Source: Adineta vaga (taxonomy: Eukaryota; Animalia; Rotifera). Taken from it: a stretch of DNA of 64,000 nucleotides. Shown here one piece after another: positions 19,906-42,960 of the stretch (position 1 is the stretch's first letter; each line of letters begins with the position of its first letter). The stretch is taken from NCBI GenBank assembly GCA_021613535.1, contig CP075496.1:5766001-5830000 (forward strand), given 5' to 3'. Position numbers and translations under genes: made by a program. Under the pieces are notes generated by a model. The model worked only from the letters and a program-made list of their open reading frames with translations. It was not told the DNA's origin and made no database searches.

Positions 19906-22398
19906 TATGTATCTTAACACTCAAAATGAAAAAGGCGTGCGCTTTCAATTGGGTTTTGATTGTAGATGAATACGATAACGGAAAAGCGCACCTGTTTATA
20001 TCTCGATCGTTGAAACAAATAAATGTTGACGTTTGAGAAAAAACAATCTATGTTTCATTTTAAATCATCTGTTTAGAAAGTGAGCGATCGATTATCGCGA
20101 TTTTCAAAGCATCTATTCACCTGTATAGGATAACCATTATCTGTCATTTTTCGTACTTTGTCTCTTTTATACTAGAATTAATTGATTTTGATGTTTGCAT
20201 TTGATTATTATATTCTTTCGTTGCACATTTCGAGATAGCTGTTAAAACTATAACGGGGTAGTATTATTGCATTTCATATAACAAGTAACGCTCATCCTCT
20301 GGATTCGCTGACCCTTTTCTGAAAGAATGATAAGAGTCCTCAGCAAAGTCATAAAGCGGAACCTGGAGCTGACCGAATCAGGATCCAACCAAACTTTATA
20401 CATAAAAGCCTTTTAAAAGTGTTTTCATCTTTTCATTCTTTCAAAATATCATCAAATCATTTATAGAAAGAGAAAAGAAAAGACAAATACTGTTTGTAAA
20501 CATTCATGGAATTGATTGCTTTATATTTCTCAAAACTGCATCACCCGTGCTTATTTTCCTTCCTATAAAGCTCTTAAACAAACGTCTAATCGCTAATACG
20601 CATGGTCTTTTTTCTAATTTCCTTTCTATTGTATGAGTGTAAGGGGAAAGATTCGCTCATCATGTCAGATTATTTCGTAACCGAAGACTAAAGAACTTCC
20701 CATGAAGACGTCATTTTCAGGAAAAAAAAATTGTCGGATTCGTTCTCGTAGATCATCAATTAAGCGCCTCCCAACAAACGTCCAAATCACGTGAAAGTAA
20801 TACAAATCGATATTCTGAAGTGTTACTCTCTAAATCAACGTCTAGTCGTTCGTCGGCCTCCCTCTGGTCAGCCACTTACGGCTAGCCGTTACCATAGACG
20901 CCTTTATTGTTTCGTCTGCTTTTGATTCATTTCTCAAACGAATAAGTGAATTCCTTTAGTTCTCCTTTTGAAAAGGCACATGCTTTGTATTACTATGATT
21001 CTTGGAAAGAAAATAGAAAGGCCAGGTACTATTTCATGAGTAGCTAGAATCAGAGAATATTTGACTATAGAATAGTTTTTTCCATGTTTTGAAATGTTAT
21101 TTCCATTTTTGACGCACAGCTAGATCCATCAAAACAACTGCAAACATCCATCTGGATTTTATACACATATTTCTTGTAAAAATTCTATCAGATGATCTGA
21201 TGTATTATAGTCGACTACGCAAAGATGTTTAAAGAAAGATCACAAAAGTATCGCACCTATTCTGTTGATTGCCTGGAGTGCAGTTTTTTTTATCAATTTC
21301 TTACTGAATTCTATACTCAGAATTCGTAAATGATGCCAATGGCACACAGCCCACGAACACCAGGCCATTCATTAGTGGCTATTACCATTTTAAAAAGAGC
21401 TATACACTGGCATATCTATCTTGGAGAGAAAGACAAAAGACAATAGTGGAGTCGATTAGGTAGAACTGACATCAGATTCAAATTCATTACTCTCGTTAGT
21501 TTTCGATAGAACTTGAACAAACACTCATGAAATATTGAGTTTTCTGGGAGGGAAAGATAAAAACAGGTCTCAGATAAACAATTCATCAAAAACTAACATT
21601 GCTTTCGAGATCCTCGACTTCGATTACCCTTTCATCAACTCTTACATGGTAGTATAATAACTTTTAATTAGTTAATTAGAATTTCGAAAAGCTAACACCA
21701 GAATCGTGATCCTCGCCCCCGATTACCCTTTGGTCCACCCTTACTCGACAGTTTCATAGTTAATGATTTCTTAACGAGGTAATTAGATAACTAACTAAGT
21801 GGTATCTTGTAAAACTAACACTAGAATCGTGTTCCTCGACCTCGATTGCCTCTTGATAATCGTTTCATAATGGACGTAGGTAAGTTCTTGTCGTTGAATC
21901 AAATGCTATATTCTGATTGGATTAGAGAAACCATAAAAACTCTTTGTCTTAAAAAATTGTATAGATAGTTTTTTTTAAACTAACGGCAGATTCGGATTCC
22001 TTGACCTTGATTACCCTTTGATGACTCGTCTTCTAATCAGTATGAATAAGTTATGGTTAATTTATCGAATGCTGTTTCCTGATTGGCTTGGACAAACAAA
22101 CTTTAAGCATTTTAGCGACCCTATTTAACGATCCTATAACCCTTTCTTACAGAAAAGGGAATAAATATGTACAAAATTTTTCTACGTGCTTTTTCAGTAC
22201 TGTACTTTCTTTTATTAATTTGGTGAAAAGTCATAAATAGAGTTGATTAGAAAGAATTTACTCGTTAATCTGTGCATGTAATCGTTATTTTATTTACAAT
22301 ATTCGATTTCAGATCGATTGAAAATTACAATAATGTTTTGTAAACAAATCAATTCCGCAAAAGTTCAAAGTAATGATCCTTGCATTTATTCATATGTT

Positions 22399-34409: not shown

Positions 34410-36738
34410 CTAAGAGATTCGATCTAACTGTACAAAAATTTTGCCATCATAAAATGGCACTAGTTCATCATCCATTGTCAATTCACGAAAAACATACTGC
34501 TCTTTATTAATATCTGGTGTACAAGTTGTTTTGAAGAAATATCTATAAGACGAAAAAATAAATTTCTTTCTCAATCATCTTTAGAAAATGTCCTTTTCTC
34601 ATACCTGTAAATTGGTTGTTTTTTGAATAGTTGTCGAAATTCTTTCAGAATTAAATGATCATGTATGCGAGGAATCGTTGATAGAAGAGCATTATGACTA
34701 TCAAGTGATGGATACCAAACAACATCAATAGTTGGTAAACGTTGACAACGATATGTTTCATAATTTCTATAAAATATATCTTCTTCATATTTCAGTATTC
34801 CAGCTGATTTTACTCACTTTTCTGATGTATCTGTTCCAACGCCTGAGTCGGATCGTGTAAAACTATTCCCTAGTATGGAATAGTTTTTGTTTTGGTAATG
34901 TTTTGATATCAATGGTGATTTATATCGATAAGTTGTTTTCGTTGGACTTTCAAATAGACTATTATCTGCATCATCGATTGTTTTCGCAATTTGAGAATCA
35001 AGAACAGCTAATGAATCTTCATCCACTGTTCGATGATCTATAAAAGTAAGTTTATTATGTACATTGAGCGATTGAGATAGGCCACGAATTTTTGCTGCAC
35101 TGGAATTTTCTGCTTGATAAGCTAGAAGACGTGTTTTAATTTCTTCGAAAAACGCAGCTGGATCACGTTGTGCAAGACTATATTGATCTCTTTGTTGTTT
35201 AGTTAATTTAGTTGTACGCTTTCAAATAAACAAGATAACATAGAAAAATCTTTATTTTTGATTTTATCAATGATAAACATACCGGTTGTTTTGATACATT
35301 CAATCCGGCTTCATGATCAGCAATCAATGTTGATCCTTCCAACGAACTAGAATAAAACAATATTCAGATGTTTATTTCTTTTCAAACTTTTCTTTTCTTA
35401 GAAAAGATTCAACTTACAATGCATAAGGATTTCGCATCAATAAGAGTGTCATTGTTCAAGTAAATGTACAGTTAATCTCAAAATATGAGAGATGTATATA
35501 TGTCTCTCTATTTCTTTTCTTTCTTTTTATTTCTCTCGCTCTTTTTTTTTGATAGTCTGCTCTCTAACAAGCGCGGCGTCGGCGTCGGCACAATAGTGTA
35601 ATCTAATTGAATGTGATTCATGTTGACAAGATCAAAAAGACCGACAACGTTAGAAGTTAGAACGATCAAAGTAAACCGCGTACTTTGAAGTTCAGACAAG
35701 CCGCGATGGTGGTGGCGGCAACGACAGAAGAAGACAAGAGAAAAGAAACGAATCAACCAACGAACCAACGGTCGATGGTTAACCATTCATCCATCGAGCC
35801 TAATCTACAGGTTGTTCTCTTACTCTTCAATCAACTATTTCAGTGAAAGCGTGACGAAATGCATACACTTGTTTGATGATGAATGATCACAGATCTCACT
35901 TTCGGCTGTCTTTCTCCAAAACATATTGCCATGTGATTGAAGAATATAAAAGATGGCACCTCTACTCTTTTCTGTATGATGAAAAGAAATTCAATTTGAT
36001 GTAGACTTACCTAGGGTCATTTGAATGCTGACGAATGTGGGATGATGTTTTTATAGGAGCAGAAGTACTAGAAAAAAAAAGAAATTCCTTATCACATTAG
36101 TTTATTCTTTTACGCGATTAGAAGACGAAAGAAAAGATAGAAAATTAAGAAGCAACTTCTTTCTTTGAAAAGAAATCTTACTTAAGAATACGGTGACTAG
36201 TTTTTTGTTTTAAGTGTTCATAAACATCCTTTCTTCTCAATGACATTGCTCTTCTATGCATTGGACTAAATGTTGATGTATTCAAAGCTTGTCGTTTTGT
36301 TTCATTTTCTTCTTGATATTGTTGTTGTTGTTCTTCAATAAGAAATTTTGGATAACACATTTGTAACATATATTTTAAAACATATTCTTGAGCTTGTTCA
36401 TAAAATTTCAAATGATATTCATGTTTAATTAATCGTTGTTTTATTGATGAGATTAAATCATCCGGTAAAGAAAATTTCTTTTTCGATGAAGATAAATCTT
36501 TCTCATTCGATAAATAATGTTTATAGATCAATTGAATAATTGCACCTTGTTTTGTCGTATCATCAAGTAAATTTTTTAGACCATCACATGCTAAATAGAA
36601 TTCTAATACATATGCTAATTGTTCAGATTTCATATAAATATAAAATTGTTCACATAATTCGGGTTGATTAAGAAATTGAAGAAATTGTTTGCGTAAATCA
36701 CACTCGGTCGTTTTCGTTGATGATGATGATGATGTCAT
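34410..36738 (-). CDS. Axin: Axin (RGS domain, GSK3- and beta-catenin-binding segments, DIX domain); non-coding 5' exons upstream to at least ~38050
   Basis: RGS: FYIYMKSE....VLEFYLACDGL...IYKHYL...FYEQAQ...YPKFL. DPAAFFEEIKTRL resembles the Axin GSK3-binding helix. EDSLAVLDSQI resembles the beta-catenin-binding helix. DIX end YRYFFKT..VFRELT.DDELVPFYDGKIFVQLDR. Confidence 0.88.
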
Positions 36739-38636
36739 ATTCAATCTAATCAAATGAATAAGCATATGTGTTTATTTGAATGTATATATATACGTACATA
36801 AATATCTTCATTAGAGAACTCAGAAGAGCAGAATAATCAATCGACTTACCACATTATAAAATTGTTTTTATTAACTGAAAAGAGATATCTAATGGACTTT
36901 TCTATGTGCGAATATATAGATTTCTTTTGATGTTAAATGCTTACTGAATAGACAGAACGAAAAAAAAAACGGTCGGAACACTTTTTGAATAATTTCAAGC
37001 AGTAACAGCTTTTTCTTTCTTTATCGAAAAAAAAGAAAGATCAAAGAGATTTATTGACAAATGATCATCGTACATTTTCTCATGACGAACAATTCGTATG
37101 AAAAGAGAAAATTTTTCGAAAATCAAGATGTCATCATCATTATTTCTAATGATGATATGTTAAGAGTGCTATATCTGATATCTTCAAGAGATCAATATGA
37201 CACGGTTTGCGCTACTTCGAAAAAATAAAAAGAATGATAAACATATTCATTTATTGATACATGTCAATTGCCTCTTCAATCTAATCAGCTCTTGATATCG
37301 AACATTTGGTTTTGTTTTTGTCGAGAAAAGTATCAGCGTTGATTTGTTTAAGAATTATCTCAACGGATGGAGAATATGTCGTGAGAGACGATTAACACAC
37401 GGAAGAAATGAAATTCAATTAGAAAATCGAAGTGAGAAAGATAAAAAAAATTGAATGAGTTTTCTATGTTGTTCAAATAAAATTATCGCTTTCAATGTGA
37501 TGATTTCGTTTACAGATAAAACATTTGTCTTGCACTTATCAGATCGATAGATTACTTTCTGTATACATTATGTCTCAAATAGAGGAGGTTATGGATGATT
37601 GAATTTTGTTACAAGATGTCAGAGAAGAAGTGTGAAAAGATACTTTTAGAAATTGATCGAATGTCTATGAAAACATTCTGCGATTTTATCTAAGTTTGAT
37701 TGACGAACTATGATCTATCTAATCTTTGTCTAAAAGTATGAAGATACATTTCAATATTGATGATTTGCAAAAGAAGAGTATACATCATTGTTATTGCTCA
37801 AGTGGTGACGAATATAGAAAGAATTCATAAAACAATACATGAGCAGGCGTGTGAAAAATCGAGAATTGTAAACTATGGTACACATAAGAATTGATTTCGT
37901 CACCTACTTAACGAAAGATTAATTTCAAGAAAATGATAATCAGCTCATTTCAATATTTATCAATATTATTGATTTGTACGTTTAGAAAAGAAGACGGAAA
38001 TTTTATTCTAAGGAATATAGAATCAATGTATATTAAATAGAGAACTTACCCCTCGTTGTATGTTCTTTTCTTTGAATTCTGATAGTTTGTCATTGTTAAA
38101 TCGAACTATCTATTTATTTCCACACGTTCTCATTTACACTGTAAAACAGACGTAGACAAAACTTTATTTTCTCTCTCTCTTTCTCTGTCATTCACTCGGC
38201 TTTTCCTCACATTTATGCCAGTGGCATTTCACCACTTGAACAACCGAATTTCCTTCTTAACATCATGACTGACGCGTGCTGCCGTCAATATATTTGATAA
38301 AATAAAAAAGAAGGCGAAGAAGAAGAAAAAGAGTACTTGATTAGATTGTCTATAGCGGATCATATTCAATTTCTGATACTTCCTGTTAAGCATCGTCTTA
38401 CAGAAATTAGAAGGCAATTATTTTCCCATTAATCGAATATGAATCTTCTTACTTGTAGGAGAAATTCTATTGCATGTAAAGATTTTCTTCAAATCGTTCA
38501 ATCATAGATAGAATATGGCTGAAATAAAGATGGCTCGAGGGATGGAGGAGATGAAGCGAGAGAAAGAAAAATAATTAAGTACATTATTGCCTCAAACAAA
38601 GGCGTGTCTTCCGGTCTGGCATAATAAAAACTAGAC

Positions 38637-38664: not shown

Positions 38665-39461
38665 CGAAGAAAACGCGAGAGAGAGAAAGGAAGACAGAAG
38701 GCGGAGTAAGCAAGAGTGAGAATGTTGCATTACGTCAAATGAAATATAGCATGTCTTACATGCGCATGAATAATTCAATAGATAGATAAAAGAGAATAGT
38801 TAACTTACTTTTTTGATAGTTGTTGTAACAATGACATGGTAAATTTTTTAATAAATATCTAGAATATAACTGATTTCATCTATTATTCATATTTCTTTTA
38901 AGAATAGATATTCAATAATCCATGTCTTTTTTTTTCTTCATTAGTTTATCAATAAAACATAGTTAATAAGAGAAAAAAATCACTTTTTTCTTAATCATAC
39001 AAGAATTCTTTCCGTTGAACGAAAAGTATCTTGGTCAGTATCAGTGAGACTTGTTCAAAATATTTTTGATTTATCAAACATAGTCAAGTAAACTTAAATG
39101 ATAGTCCGATCGATATTTAGAACATGAACAAACAGAACTTCTTACCATAAGTTAATCTTACAATATCTCTGAATGATATGGATATGAAGTGAACTATTTC
39201 CTGGTCATGTCTAAGGAAAGACTTTTTCATCCATTTAATCAATGGGACTGTCCTGTGATGGATATCACTCAATAAAGGATAACCGTTTTTTCTTTCTTTC
39301 TTAATCATCTTCTGATAGGTCGATTTTCATTCAATCAAAACAGTTCTTTCGTCCTTTTTAACGCAATATTTATCGTTTGTAGCGACAAATTTTTATTTAT
39401 AAACAATAAAAGATTGTTCGCTTGATCCATTCATTTATTCATTCATTTTCTTCGAACAAAG

Positions 39462-39755
39462 ATGACAACAAACAATCGTGAAGATCTTCCTTCAGCAGCT
39501 TTTTTTACTCGAATTCTTCTTCAATCAGGCCAATATTCATCATCACCAACACTTGAGTCTGATACAGAGAAATTACTTGTTAATTTTGCTACTTTATTTG
39601 CTCAACAATTAGTTTCCAAATCATCTGCTGCTGCTGTTGCTTCAAGACGTACACAAAAATCTACTTCTATTACTCTAAATGATGTTAATTTTGTTTTAAA
39701 ACATCAATGGCCTATTTATGATTCGTCTTCATACAATAAAATATCTCAAAACTGA
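39462..39755 (+). CDS. Small intronless histone-fold protein, TAF12-like
   Basis: LESDTEKLLVNFATLFAQQLVSKS.....RR..KSTSITLNDVNFVLKHQW matches the TAF12 histone fold (LDEDVEEMLLQIADDF..SVV..AC.LA.HRKS.TLEVKDVQLHLERQW). Confidence 0.65.
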   Translation: MTTNNREDLPSAAFFTRILLQSGQYSSSPTLESDTEKLLVNFATLFAQQLVSKSSAAAVASRRTQKSTSITLNDVNFVLKHQWPIYDSSSYNKISQN

Positions 39756-39790
39756 ATACATAATCCTTCTTTTTATCGATTATTTCAGAT

Positions 39791-40306
39791 ATGTCGCATC
39801 ATTATCGTATTAATGGATCAATGATCCAACAATTTAGTGGAAAACCAGTTAGCATTATTGGTACGGTTAGCAAGGTAAGACCAGCATTTTTGAATTTATA
39901 ATTCAGTAAAGAATAAAATGTAAAAATGTTTAGGTTCATCCATCAGGCGATGTACTTGATTTAGAAACAAGTGATAAACAACATATTGTTGTACGTTCAT
40001 CGGAACATATTGTATGTGAAAAGAAAGATTTTTGCGATTTTATTCGATAGAAATTGTATTTTTGAAGGCTGATATTAATCCTGGTAGTATTATTGAAGTA
40101 CTTGGAAATGTCGATAATCGAAATCAAATTATGTGTGACACAATTGTAGCATTCGAACCTGAACAAACGGCTAATTTTGGTAAAAATTACAAAATTAAAA
40201 AAAGCTTCTTCATGTCTTCTATAAAATCTATTTAGATATGGATATGTACAATCAAGCTGTTATGCTTTTTCAACATTATCCTCAAGACTATCTTGTTAAT
40301 CTTTAA
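39791..40306 (+). CDS. RPA3: Replication protein A 14 kDa subunit (4 exons)
   Basis: Spliced MSHHYRINGSMIQQFSGKPVSIIGTVSKVHPSG....LETSD...IIEVLGNV....ANFDMDMYNQAVMLFQHYPQ matches the RPA3 OB fold. Phases are consistent across the GT-AG introns. Confidence 0.88.
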
Positions 40307-40406
40307 TTCTTGTAGAAAAAAAGGAGCTTACACGTCAGATGTTTCTTATTGAATAAAAAAAAGTCAAGTTAGGAATTGATATATAGATATAAAGATTTTA
40401 TTTCAG

Positions 40407-41541
40407 ATGGCTAGTTCATTAATTCGACATTTTGCTCGACCGGTTTTAACAACAAGTAAAGGTAGAGTTCGAATGGAAAATCAAGACATCAATATTGATC
40501 AAGGTTTAATTTAGGATTTTTGTCTGCAGCTACACATCGAACTATTCCTTCAAGTTCGATTCTTCTTTTTCATCGCACTCAAGCAACAACACCACCAGGA
40601 CCAGCACCGACACCTAATGTTCCAGCTCGTAAGCTTTATTTTTCTATCATACAATGTTTCAAATCATTTTTTTTATATAGCGAGTCTTATTCGTGTGAAT
40701 GTTGAACAACGTAAAGCACTAGTTGATTTTGGTCAATATGTTGCTGAATGTTTACCACGTTTTGTACAACATGTACAAATGACATCAACAAATGAATTAG
40801 AAATTTTAATTCATCCAGATGGAATCTTTTCTGTTATCGCTTTTCTTAAAGATCATACAAATGCTCAATTTAGTTCATTAGCAGATATTACTGCAATTGA
40901 TGTACCTACACGAACTTATCGCTTTGAGGTATGTATTCTTATTGTTGAACACTATTGTCATTTTATTTATTTAGCTTGCCTACAATTTACTTTCATTACG
41001 TTTTAATTCACGTGTTCGTGTTAAAACATATACTGATGAAATAACACCAGTAGCTAGTATATGTGATATTTTCGACGCTGCTAATTGGATGGAACGAGAG
41101 GTTTGTGGAATAAATTCCTATAAAATTAAATTTATGATCATTACAATTGATTTATAGGTTTGGGATATGTATGGTATCTATTTTACTAATCATCCTGATC
41201 TACGTCGTATTTTGACTGATTATGGTTTCGAGGGTCATCCAATGCGAAAAGATTTTCCTTTACCAGGTTATACTGAAGTTCGATATGATGAAGAACAACG
41301 TCGTGTTGTAATTGAACCAATTGAATTAACACAAGATTATCGTAAATTTGATTTGAGTACACCATGGGAAACATTTCCTAAAGTAAGATTTACCAAATTG
41401 AATATTGAAATATAAAAACTAAATCTTTCTTCGATGATGTTTTAGTTTCGTAATCCTAATCATGATGATTCGAAGAAACGTCAAGAAGCAAAAACACCTG
41501 AACTTTCTCAACCGGTAGCTGCCAATGAAAATAAAAAATAA
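40407..41541 (+). CDS. NDUFS3: Complex I 30 kDa subunit
   Basis: [88 protein letters not shown]. Confidence 0.97.
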
Positions 41542-41726
41542 ATGAACGACTCCTACGTTCCTTTTTGCTTTCTTTTCCTGTACATAGGTGTCGTTTGTTT
41601 TTCTTCTATTCAGTTTCCATTTCAAACAATAAAATTATCTTAGCATCATCCCACAAGATTCATATCTTTTCACTTTAATACAACACAAAACCTCTGTATC
41701 TCTCTCTCTCTTACAGATATTTCAAG

Positions 41727-41981
41727 ATGTTAATATCAACAATTCTTCAAAGAACAGTTTTAAAGTCAACTTCATTGCCAATGATGTTTATTCGATCATA
41801 TAGAACAAAAGATATGTTACGTCGGCGATGTGCAGATTGTTATGTTGTTTGGCGTTATGGACGAATGTATATTGAATGTCCAAAATTTCCACGTCATAAA
41901 ACTGTGTCGAAATTTGCCAAAGAAAAAGGCTGGGGTTGGCTAGATTGGCGATTAGCACCCAAACTTGAACGAATCAAATAA
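41727..41981 (+). CDS. MRPL36: Mitochondrial ribosomal protein bL36m
   Basis: Basic transit-peptide-like N-terminus, then YRTKDMLRRRCADCYVVWRYGRMYIECPKFPRHK (L36 zinc ribbon C..C...C....H). Confidence 0.88.
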   Translation: MLISTILQRTVLKSTSLPMMFIRSYRTKDMLRRRCADCYVVWRYGRMYIECPKFPRHKTVSKFAKEKGWGWLDWRLAPKLERIK

Positions 41982-42960
41982 TGAATTTGTCAATTTTGTT
42001 ATTCGTTTTGTTTACTGATAGAATATCATAAAATAAACATTGTAGTCTAAACGATTGGATAAAATTGATAATTTTATTCTCAAATATAACGATCATGTCC
42101 GTGAAGATGATTTCTTGAGAATACGATGATTACTTTGGTCGTTTTTCTCATCTCCACATGTTTCTAACAAGTACAATAACAATCGCCATAGAAAGTTATG
42201 AGAAGAAAAAGTGATGACTGTCTAGCAAAAAAATTGTCTAATCAAAACATCATAAGAATGAATGAGATGAGTTCGCACGATGATATTAATGCTGTATGAA
42301 CTCTATCTGCAGGAGGTGGAGAAAAAAGAAAAAGACGAGAATCATTTGGAACAACGATATAAACTACTAGACTGTTGCAATCTCCACAGTCATTAATCAA
42401 ACAAATGATGAACCATTGTTTATAAGCGTGATTGCACACGTATGCAACTATTCATCATTTTACCATCAATTTACGAAAGAAAGAAAGAAAGAAGAGAACA
42501 CGCATAATCAATATATAACTTGTTAGTAGGATAATCTCATTGATGTCAAAGAGATGAGCATATATTCTCTAGTGTTAGATAGAAATCGACTTTCCATCAG
42601 TAAATGTCCCTGCTGTGACGTTTTATTGATATGATATTGGATAAATTTGTCCATTTGGTATTGTTTCATTTTCCATTTAACCATCTGTTGGATTATTCTC
42701 TTTTTGTTATTTGATCGATTCGAGGTGTGTGTGTGTGTGTGTATACGTTAAGAGAAAACCTTGTCTCGAAACATCATTGCTTGTTTTTCAATCAATCAAT
42801 CGCTTAGTCTTACGTCATTCTTTTTTTTTCTCTAGAAAAAATGCGACGAGGATGCTCATTTCGATATGGAATGAATCACATATGTGTATTAAGAATTCTT
42901 CTCTAGAACAGATTTATCAGGTGCTTGACATTTGATAGATTGATCTTCATTGTCATATCA

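Follow-up and report, generated by a model that had tools for sequence, protein, structure and literature searches.

A cluster of four genes of Adineta vaga, a bdelloid rotifer, is probably an operon whose transcript is resolved by spliced-leader trans-splicing. The cluster lies on the plus strand between positions 39462 and 41981 of a 64,000-nucleotide (nt) stretch of the genome (assembly GCA_021613535.1, contig CP075496.1, positions 5,766,001 to 5,830,000; hereafter "the window"), which is AT-rich eukaryotic DNA with a GC content of about 0.30. It comprises genes for a TAF12-like protein (gene 1), RPA3, NDUFS3, and MRPL36, arranged head to tail with stop-to-ATG gaps of 35, 100, and 185 nt (junctions 1, 2, and 3). 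The first two junctions would be of the type known from the tunicate Ciona and the third would resemble those of nematodes. Three lines of evidence meet at this one locus: spliced RNA that runs over the gene boundaries, a downstream messenger RNA (mRNA) that carries the leader, and the lack of intercistronic DNA. We infer from them that NDUFS3 and MRPL36 also receive the leader and that single molecules carry all four genes. The parts of the cluster are the following (UTR, untranslated region; all positions are those of the window).

39462-39755, plus strand: gene 1, TAF12-like histone-fold protein, single exon, 97 amino acids (Pfam, family profile, RNA)
39756-39790, plus strand: junction 1 spacer, 35 nt, entirely 3'UTR of gene 1 (RNA contigs)
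39791-40306, plus strand: RPA3, 14-kDa subunit of replication protein A, four exons (PF08661, RNA)
39791-39874, 39934-40011, 40068-40179, and 40236-40306, plus strand: RPA3 exons, the three introns being GT..AG joints in RNA contigs
40307-40406, plus strand: junction 2 spacer, which is the 3'UTR of RPA3 (RNA contigs, alignment)
40407-41541, plus strand: NDUFS3, 30-kDa subunit of complex I, six exons (PF00329, RNA)
40407-40461, 40515-40628, 40681-40928, 40975-41100, 41158-41382, and 41446-41541, plus strand: NDUFS3 exons, with five GT..AG joints in RNA contigs
41542-41726, plus strand: junction 3 spacer, consisting of the NDUFS3 3'UTR, a 60-nt intercistronic stretch, and the MRPL36 5'UTR (RNA contigs, alignment)
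41657-41716, plus strand: the 60-nt intercistronic stretch of junction 3 (delimited by the NDUFS3 poly(A) site and the acceptor)
41717-41726, plus strand: MRPL36 5'UTR
41727-41981, plus strand: MRPL36, mitochondrial ribosomal protein L36, single exon, 84 amino acids (PF00444)

The RNA data are Logan contigs from four runs (X1, X3, X5, and X6) of three studies, X1 and X3 belonging to the same one. A contig of 2137 nt from X1 spans 39478-42056, with all eight introns removed and all three spacers retained. Contig sequence is uninterrupted across junction 1 in X1 (39478-39872) and across junction 2 in X1 and X3 (40235-40459), and X3 contigs bridge junctions 2 and 3. The stretch 41657-41716, which is part of neither mature mRNA, is present in spliced contigs of both runs. 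At junctions 1 and 2 the mature messages overlap nowhere, and an assembly built on 31-mers can cross these points only with crossing RNA (or DNA) reads. The bridging is unlikely to stem from assembled genomic DNA, because contig depth in X1 and X3 is zero in the flanks (39002-39335 and 42175-42842). The polycistronic precursor proposed in an earlier note on this DNA, which was made from the sequence alone, would agree with these spliced contigs, which run over every one of the three spacers.

The ends of the individual messages are also visible in the contigs. Those of X6 carry 14 non-templated A behind 39789 (gene 1), 18 behind 40407 (RPA3), and 10 behind 41656 (NDUFS3), and one X5 contig also stops at 41656. 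Positions 39789 and 40407 are themselves A, and therefore the tails at junctions 1 and 2 begin immediately behind the acceptor AG, which leaves these two junctions with no intercistronic DNA. The poly(A) site of NDUFS3, at about 41654-41656, lies 23 nt past an AATAAA and 60 nt ahead of the MRPL36 acceptor. At the end of the cluster, contigs of X1 and X5 stop at 42056, 19 nt past the AATAAA at 42032-7, and none of the four runs has any contig depth over 42175-42842. With no plus-strand expression beyond this point, the unit therefore ends with MRPL36.

The leader itself is found on RPA3. An X5 contig of the spliced RPA3 mRNA has 21 non-genomic letters, GGCTTATTACAACTTACCAAG, ahead of 39787; together with the genomic AG at 39787-8 they make up the published 23-nt rotifer leader (PMC3795323, Table 1), joined at 39789, the position at which the earlier note had expected it. 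This is the ordinary 23-nt bdelloid leader. The same note had raised the possibility of a distinct leader variant on downstream genes; RPA3 carries neither this nor a specialized leader like that of the SL2-type operons of Caenorhabditis elegans. In the genome searched (100.8 megabases in six pieces, with the window on contig 4), the leader exon with a GT donor behind it occurs in 42 copies; a reversed-pattern control gave 0. The 42 copies share one sequence, in a search that allowed 1 mismatch only and in which divergent variants were not sought. Their first position is T where the complementary DNA (cDNA) has G, and the other 22 letters are identical. These 42 spliced-leader RNA genes (e.g., at C1:2551158-2551338 and C5:9884354-9925971) often form inverted pairs, with leader exons starting about 156 nt apart on opposite strands, and their arrays lie mainly on contigs 2 and 5. 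For MRPL36, one X5 contig (record 9) begins at 41715 with 7 unaligned letters, a hint of the leader on this gene that is suggestive only.

In Ciona, operons were established by the same three kinds of evidence, namely dicistronic RNA, leader-bearing downstream mRNA, and the lack of intercistronic DNA, and it was argued that neither end can form unless the boundary is transcribed (Satou et al. 2006, PMC1488885). In our locus, the upstream message's 3' end overlaps the branch point and the acceptor of the downstream one, and thus either product needs transcription across the boundary.

We propose the following course of events. RNA polymerase II would start in a conserved bidirectional promoter region at about 39240-39460 and transcribe the four genes into one precursor, from which the cis-introns would be removed. 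Two processes would separate the precursor into messages of single genes: the formation of polyadenylated 3' ends and trans-splicing, in which the ordinary leader would supply the cap and be joined at a YAG/AT acceptor (the slash marks the joint) located 0-10 nt ahead of each downstream ATG. The upstream tail of junctions 1 and 2 would begin right after the AG used by the downstream gene. At junction 3, cleavage would take place 23 nt past AATAAA and leave the 60-nt stretch before the acceptor. The levels of the different gene products are probably set after transcription, for example via conserved elements of the 3'UTRs.

Several observations weigh against an operon. The leader is directly displayed on RPA3 alone. 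The RNA evidence consists entirely of assembled contigs, neither reads nor single molecules, and a bridging contig could stitch an upstream mRNA to an overlapping, outron-bearing pre-mRNA that started at an internal promoter. Junction 1 is bridged in one run only, and junctions 2 and 3 in two runs of one study. Contig depth differs several-fold between the genes, although depth cannot rank them. No 5' end was found for the transcript of gene 1, where contigs begin at 39478 or 39500. Two exact-pattern scans of JGI metagenome contigs gave no leader-NDUFS3 or leader-MRPL36 junctions, a result that is uninformative given that this collection is perhaps poor in rotifer transcripts. Neighboring genes outside the cluster (Axin-like and CPEB-like) are also syntenic among bdelloids, and gene order alone is no proof of operon constraint. 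Finally, a conserved 17-mer with an initiator-like TCAGAT in the 3'UTR of RPA3 could be an internal start site for NDUFS3.

The main true rival of the operon is a row of four independent, tightly packed units, in which each downstream gene would have a promoter embedded in the coding or 3'UTR sequence of the gene upstream, a short outron, and its own trans-splicing, with the bridging contigs resulting from read-through or assembly joins. Such an arrangement would agree with the apparent differences in expression level between the genes and with the use of the leader on over half of bdelloid mRNAs, clustered or not (according to the passage of PMC1925144 that cites Pouchkina-Stantcheva and Tunnacliffe 2005), and contigs cannot prove single molecules. 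However, the upstream messages of junctions 1 and 2 end on the very AG that the downstream gene uses, and they contain the branch point and pyrimidine tract of that gene. The promoter of RPA3 would need to sit within the 294-nt coding sequence of gene 1, and the spacers, apart from their acceptor and poly(A) elements, are devoid of the dense conserved promoter-like blocks seen upstream of gene 1. The presence of 41657-41716 in spliced contigs of two runs also speaks against separate units. We thus consider fully independent promoters quite improbable.

An arrangement with both kinds of initiation is unlikely but would be a refinement of the operon rather than an alternative to it. In such a hybrid, the upstream promoter would be joined by an internal one in the RPA3 3'UTR, at the 17-mer GTCAGATGTTTCTTATT (40334-40350), yielding extra transcripts of NDUFS3 (and MRPL36) in which the leader would take the place of an outron of about 70 nt at 40407. 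C. elegans is known to have hybrid operons of this sort, with internal promoters. The 17-mer is kept in 6 of the 6 aligned lineages, sits about 60-75 nt ahead of the NDUFS3 acceptor, and is unique in the genome in its exact form. The NDUFS3 contigs are also the deepest on average in three runs, which is weak support, being a depth per contig. On the other hand, the 17-mer could equally be a regulatory or polyadenylation-enhancing element of the RPA3 3'UTR, and it is not a widespread core-promoter motif: with up to one mismatch allowed, the genome has 19 occurrences, compared with 7 of a control. An internal initiator, an element of the 3'UTR, and a processing signal are all candidate roles for it.

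The three acceptors could in principle serve ordinary cis-splicing, joining the coding exons to upstream non-coding exons. The open reading frame of gene 1 would then lie in a 5'UTR intron of RPA3, an explanation that the earlier note had itself set against the operon. We find it barely conceivable, and nothing in its favor was found. The only joints in the RNA contigs of the four runs are those of the eight internal introns, and none was seen from an upstream exon into 39789, 40407, or 41717. The letters joined at 39789 are those of the leader, encoded elsewhere in 42 copies. Furthermore, gene 1 belongs to a conserved protein family and has its own poly(A) tail, which contradicts its being part of an intron.

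The signals in the DNA that led to the proposal of an operon are all in place: the co-oriented genes, their gaps, the positions of AATAAA, the acceptors, and spacers that offer no usable GT donor. The acceptor AGs are at 39787-8, 40405-6, and 41715-6, so that every gap closes with YAG/AT at 0-10 nt from the ATG. The spliced leader is joined at one of the three, and at two of them poly(A) is added. The sequence 39756-39788 is free of GT, and the sole GT 3' of 41628 is at 41696-7, 19 nt ahead of the AG. The AATAAA hexamers are at 39735 (within the coding sequence of gene 1), 40352-7, and 41628-33. They carry little weight alone, because AATAAA occurs 1.6 times per kilobase on the plus strand of the window and the hexamer of junction 1 is not kept in other lineages; it is the acceptors that exceed chance. 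The layout read in the earlier note, a hexamer and then, some 50-90 nt on, an acceptor, needs correction at junctions 1 and 2, where the tail directly follows the acceptor AG about 50 nt past AATAAA, as in the Ciona type. Elsewhere in the window (22307-22335, plus strand) there is another TTTCAG/AT acceptor-like site, with the ATG of an 84-amino-acid open reading frame 20 nt on, which may be a trans-splice acceptor.

The cluster is shared among bdelloids. In at least nine lineages of two families, the genes keep their order and strand, and the sizes of the gaps and the acceptors are retained; the conserved cluster is found in Adineta ricciae, Rotaria magnacalcarata, Rotaria sordida, and at least five further lineages (metagenome and Logan contigs). 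Conservation in other rotifers was one of the checks named in the earlier note, and within the bdelloids it came out in the note's favor. The gaps range over 19-51, 98-123, and about 140-200 nt across lineages. The acceptors are YAG/AT in 18 of the 18 cases compared in six lineages; that of junction 1 is retained as TTCAG/AT in nine lineages, and ATTTCAG/ATGGCTAGTTC at the start of NDUFS3 shows no change in nine. All of the short contigs from JGI, ENA, and Logan that we considered as transcripts keep the introns and are genomic; they support synteny and were discarded as RNA evidence. DNA and three protein searches for an ohnologous second cluster in this genome matched only the locus itself. 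In one assembly of R. magnacalcarata (GCA_905332145.1; L014 5358-7429), RPA3 and NDUFS3 are annotated as one gene model of 391 amino acids, and in a second assembly of this species they are separate. The fused annotation is probably an artifact of polycistronic RNA evidence.

The overlap of tail and acceptor raises a further question: how are the upstream messages of junctions 1 and 2 terminated? One explanation, which we hold to be rather doubtful, is that trans-splicing itself makes the upstream 3'-OH at the acceptor AG. This end would be polyadenylated after debranching, with no need for AAUAAA-directed cleavage. The start of the tail directly after the AG, with the nearest AATAAA about 50 nt upstream, fits such a mechanism. 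In at least one lineage (L019), none of the hexamer variants screened was found within about 100 nt. Alternatively, a given precursor may undergo either cleavage or trans-splicing but not both. Both ways of making the 3' end have been discussed for Ciona (Satou et al. 2006, PMC1488885). A bdelloid with many such junctions would make the first of them testable.

Upstream of the cluster, two further features delimit the region where transcription could start.

39240-39461, plus strand: promoter-like region, common to gene 1 and the divergent Axin-like gene (six-lineage alignment)
38809-39001, minus strand: 5' exon of the Axin-like neighbor, with RGS and DIX domains and a donor at 38808-7 (RNA contigs)

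The six-lineage alignment of the first region reveals an invariant 10-mer, TAGCGACAAA, at 39380-39389, a TATA-like TTATTTATAAACAA at 39393-39406, and an invariant AACAAAG directly ahead of the ATG of gene 1 (39455-39464 region). The AG of AACAAAG could be a trans-splice acceptor of gene 1 or part of a conserved translation-start context. Dense conserved blocks occur only upstream of gene 1; the spacers contain the acceptor and poly(A) elements, the 17-mer (spacer 2), and blocks of 3'UTR (spacer 3). From this pattern of conservation, the block upstream of gene 1 would act as a promoter and would be the single one of the cluster. The neighboring gene is transcribed in the opposite direction. Contigs of X1 and X3 cover about 38809-39000 at low depth, with 255 further letters that map outside the compared stretch, and this 5' exon is spliced across about 2 kilobases (38809-39001 on the minus strand; 36178-36765). 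Its position leaves about 460 nt of shared promoter region. Annotations of A. ricciae and Rotaria give the neighbor RGS and DIX domains, a divergent gene of this kind precedes the cluster in the lineages where it is conserved, and a CPEB-like gene lies further upstream in relatives.

The identities of the genes rest on Pfam matches made exon by exon. Exon 1 of RPA3 matches PF08661 with a score above threshold, as do three exons of NDUFS3 with PF00329 and MRPL36 with PF00444 (E-value 3.5e-11). The nearest named relatives of the proteins of the window are from A. ricciae (81% identity), Adineta steineri, and Rotaria. A word search for MRPL36 relatives beyond bdelloids gave only four close bdelloid clusters. 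Within NDUFS3, two bdelloid lineages (L015 6601-6951 and L021 2069-2419) lack the intron that separates exons 4 and 5, and the one between exons 3 and 4 has about 340 nt in R. magnacalcarata (L013 6527-6864) versus 46 nt in A. vaga.

Gene 1 is a more delicate case. It has a weak match to TFIID_20kDa (PF03847; E-value 2e-4, 22.2 bits, with a gathering cut-off of 27), and a canonical TAF12 fold is encoded on another chromosome (G000:C6:11523353, 49 bits). It is therefore TAF12-like and not TAF12 itself. The family has 40 homologues of 93-115 amino acids, whose named sources are all bdelloid, and a profile of 21 of these sequences matches the histone fold of human TAF12 structures (E-value 2.8e-5). 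Gene 1 is thus a small, conserved, bdelloid-specific TAF12-like paralogue, a real gene and not a chance reading frame.

The 3'UTRs contain other conserved elements. A TGTA after the stop codon of RPA3 is conserved in 5 of the 6 aligned lineages. The 3'UTR of NDUFS3 has a Pumilio-like CCTGTACATA (41577-41586). Five of the six lineages, and also L029, have this element in the form CCTGTA(N)ATA, and in R. sordida it reads CCTGTGTATA. The sequence CCTGTACATA fits the Pumilio/PUF consensus, UGUANAUA, and has the upstream C that is typical of yeast Puf3 sites on mRNAs for mitochondrial proteins. The element may set NDUFS3 levels post-transcriptionally. Further on, 41625-41652, around the poly(A) signal of NDUFS3 (AACAATAAAATTATCTTAGCAT...CCC), is near-invariant across bdelloid families, well beyond the hexamer. 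A 19-mer taken from around this signal has one near-copy elsewhere in the genome; neither it nor the 17-mer of junction 2 is a widespread genome-wide motif. We also considered a conserved hairpin in the NDUFS3 3'UTR, and rejected it: RNAalifold gave only -2.8 kcal/mol, with one compensatory pair, and the conservation is at the level of the sequence. We identified no U-rich element in the 60-nt stretch of junction 3, which is not conserved between Adineta and Rotaria.

This locus is compact, conserved, and tractable, and it has both known types of junction in one cluster. The questions it touches are whether operons emerge in every group with leader trans-splicing, how messages are separated without intercistronic DNA, and how bdelloid gene models should be built, as the fused RPA3-NDUFS3 annotation of Rotaria illustrates. 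Co-transcription of mitochondrial with core nuclear housekeeping genes is also suggested by it, for an animal known to recover from desiccation arrest. Zaslaver and colleagues, whose 2011 study PMC12460157 cites, are said to have proposed that operons help recovery from arrest.

Spliced-leader operons have been documented in nematodes, tunicates, flatworms, chaetognaths, and a few groups of protists. In C. elegans, as we propose here, a polycistronic precursor is resolved by 3'-end formation and trans-splicing. Its SL2-type operons have intercistronic regions of about 100 nt, comparable to junction 3, and its minor SL1-type operons lack such regions, like junctions 1 and 2. In contrast with C. 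elegans, no specialized downstream leader was seen on RPA3. The operons of this nematode are enriched in mitochondrial and basic gene-expression genes, and the content of the rotifer cluster fits this trend.

The operons of Ciona intestinalis and Oikopleura dioica (PMC1488885) resemble the rotifer locus in several respects. The genes are co-oriented, the tail comes directly after the downstream acceptor AG (here at junctions 1 and 2), the same single leader is used for monocistronic and operon genes, housekeeping genes predominate, and a canonical AATAAA near the cleavage site is missing or not conserved. These tunicates belong to another phylum and have a leader of unrelated sequence. In addition, junction 3 of the rotifer has a 60-nt intercistronic stretch and an AATAAA 23 nt before the cleavage site, whereby the two layouts are found in one operon. 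The evidence also differs in nature, since dicistronic cDNAs of Ciona are single molecules, whereas those of our locus are assembled contigs. A relative of rotifers is the chaetognath Paraspadella gotoi, also a gnathiferan, where about 18% of genes belong to operons that trans-splicing resolves (PMC12460157). It shares with the rotifer locus the absence of an operon-specific leader and the enrichment in housekeeping genes, but its leader is different. The same study, a genome paper of 2025, names rotifers loosely among the lineages with "trans-splicing and operonic transcription," and gives no rotifer operon data. According to the 2021 SLIDR/SLOPPR paper, operons were not reported in rotifers, and our literature search for operons or polycistronic RNA in bdelloids or Adineta found no report. 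Systems of this kind are well known in themselves.

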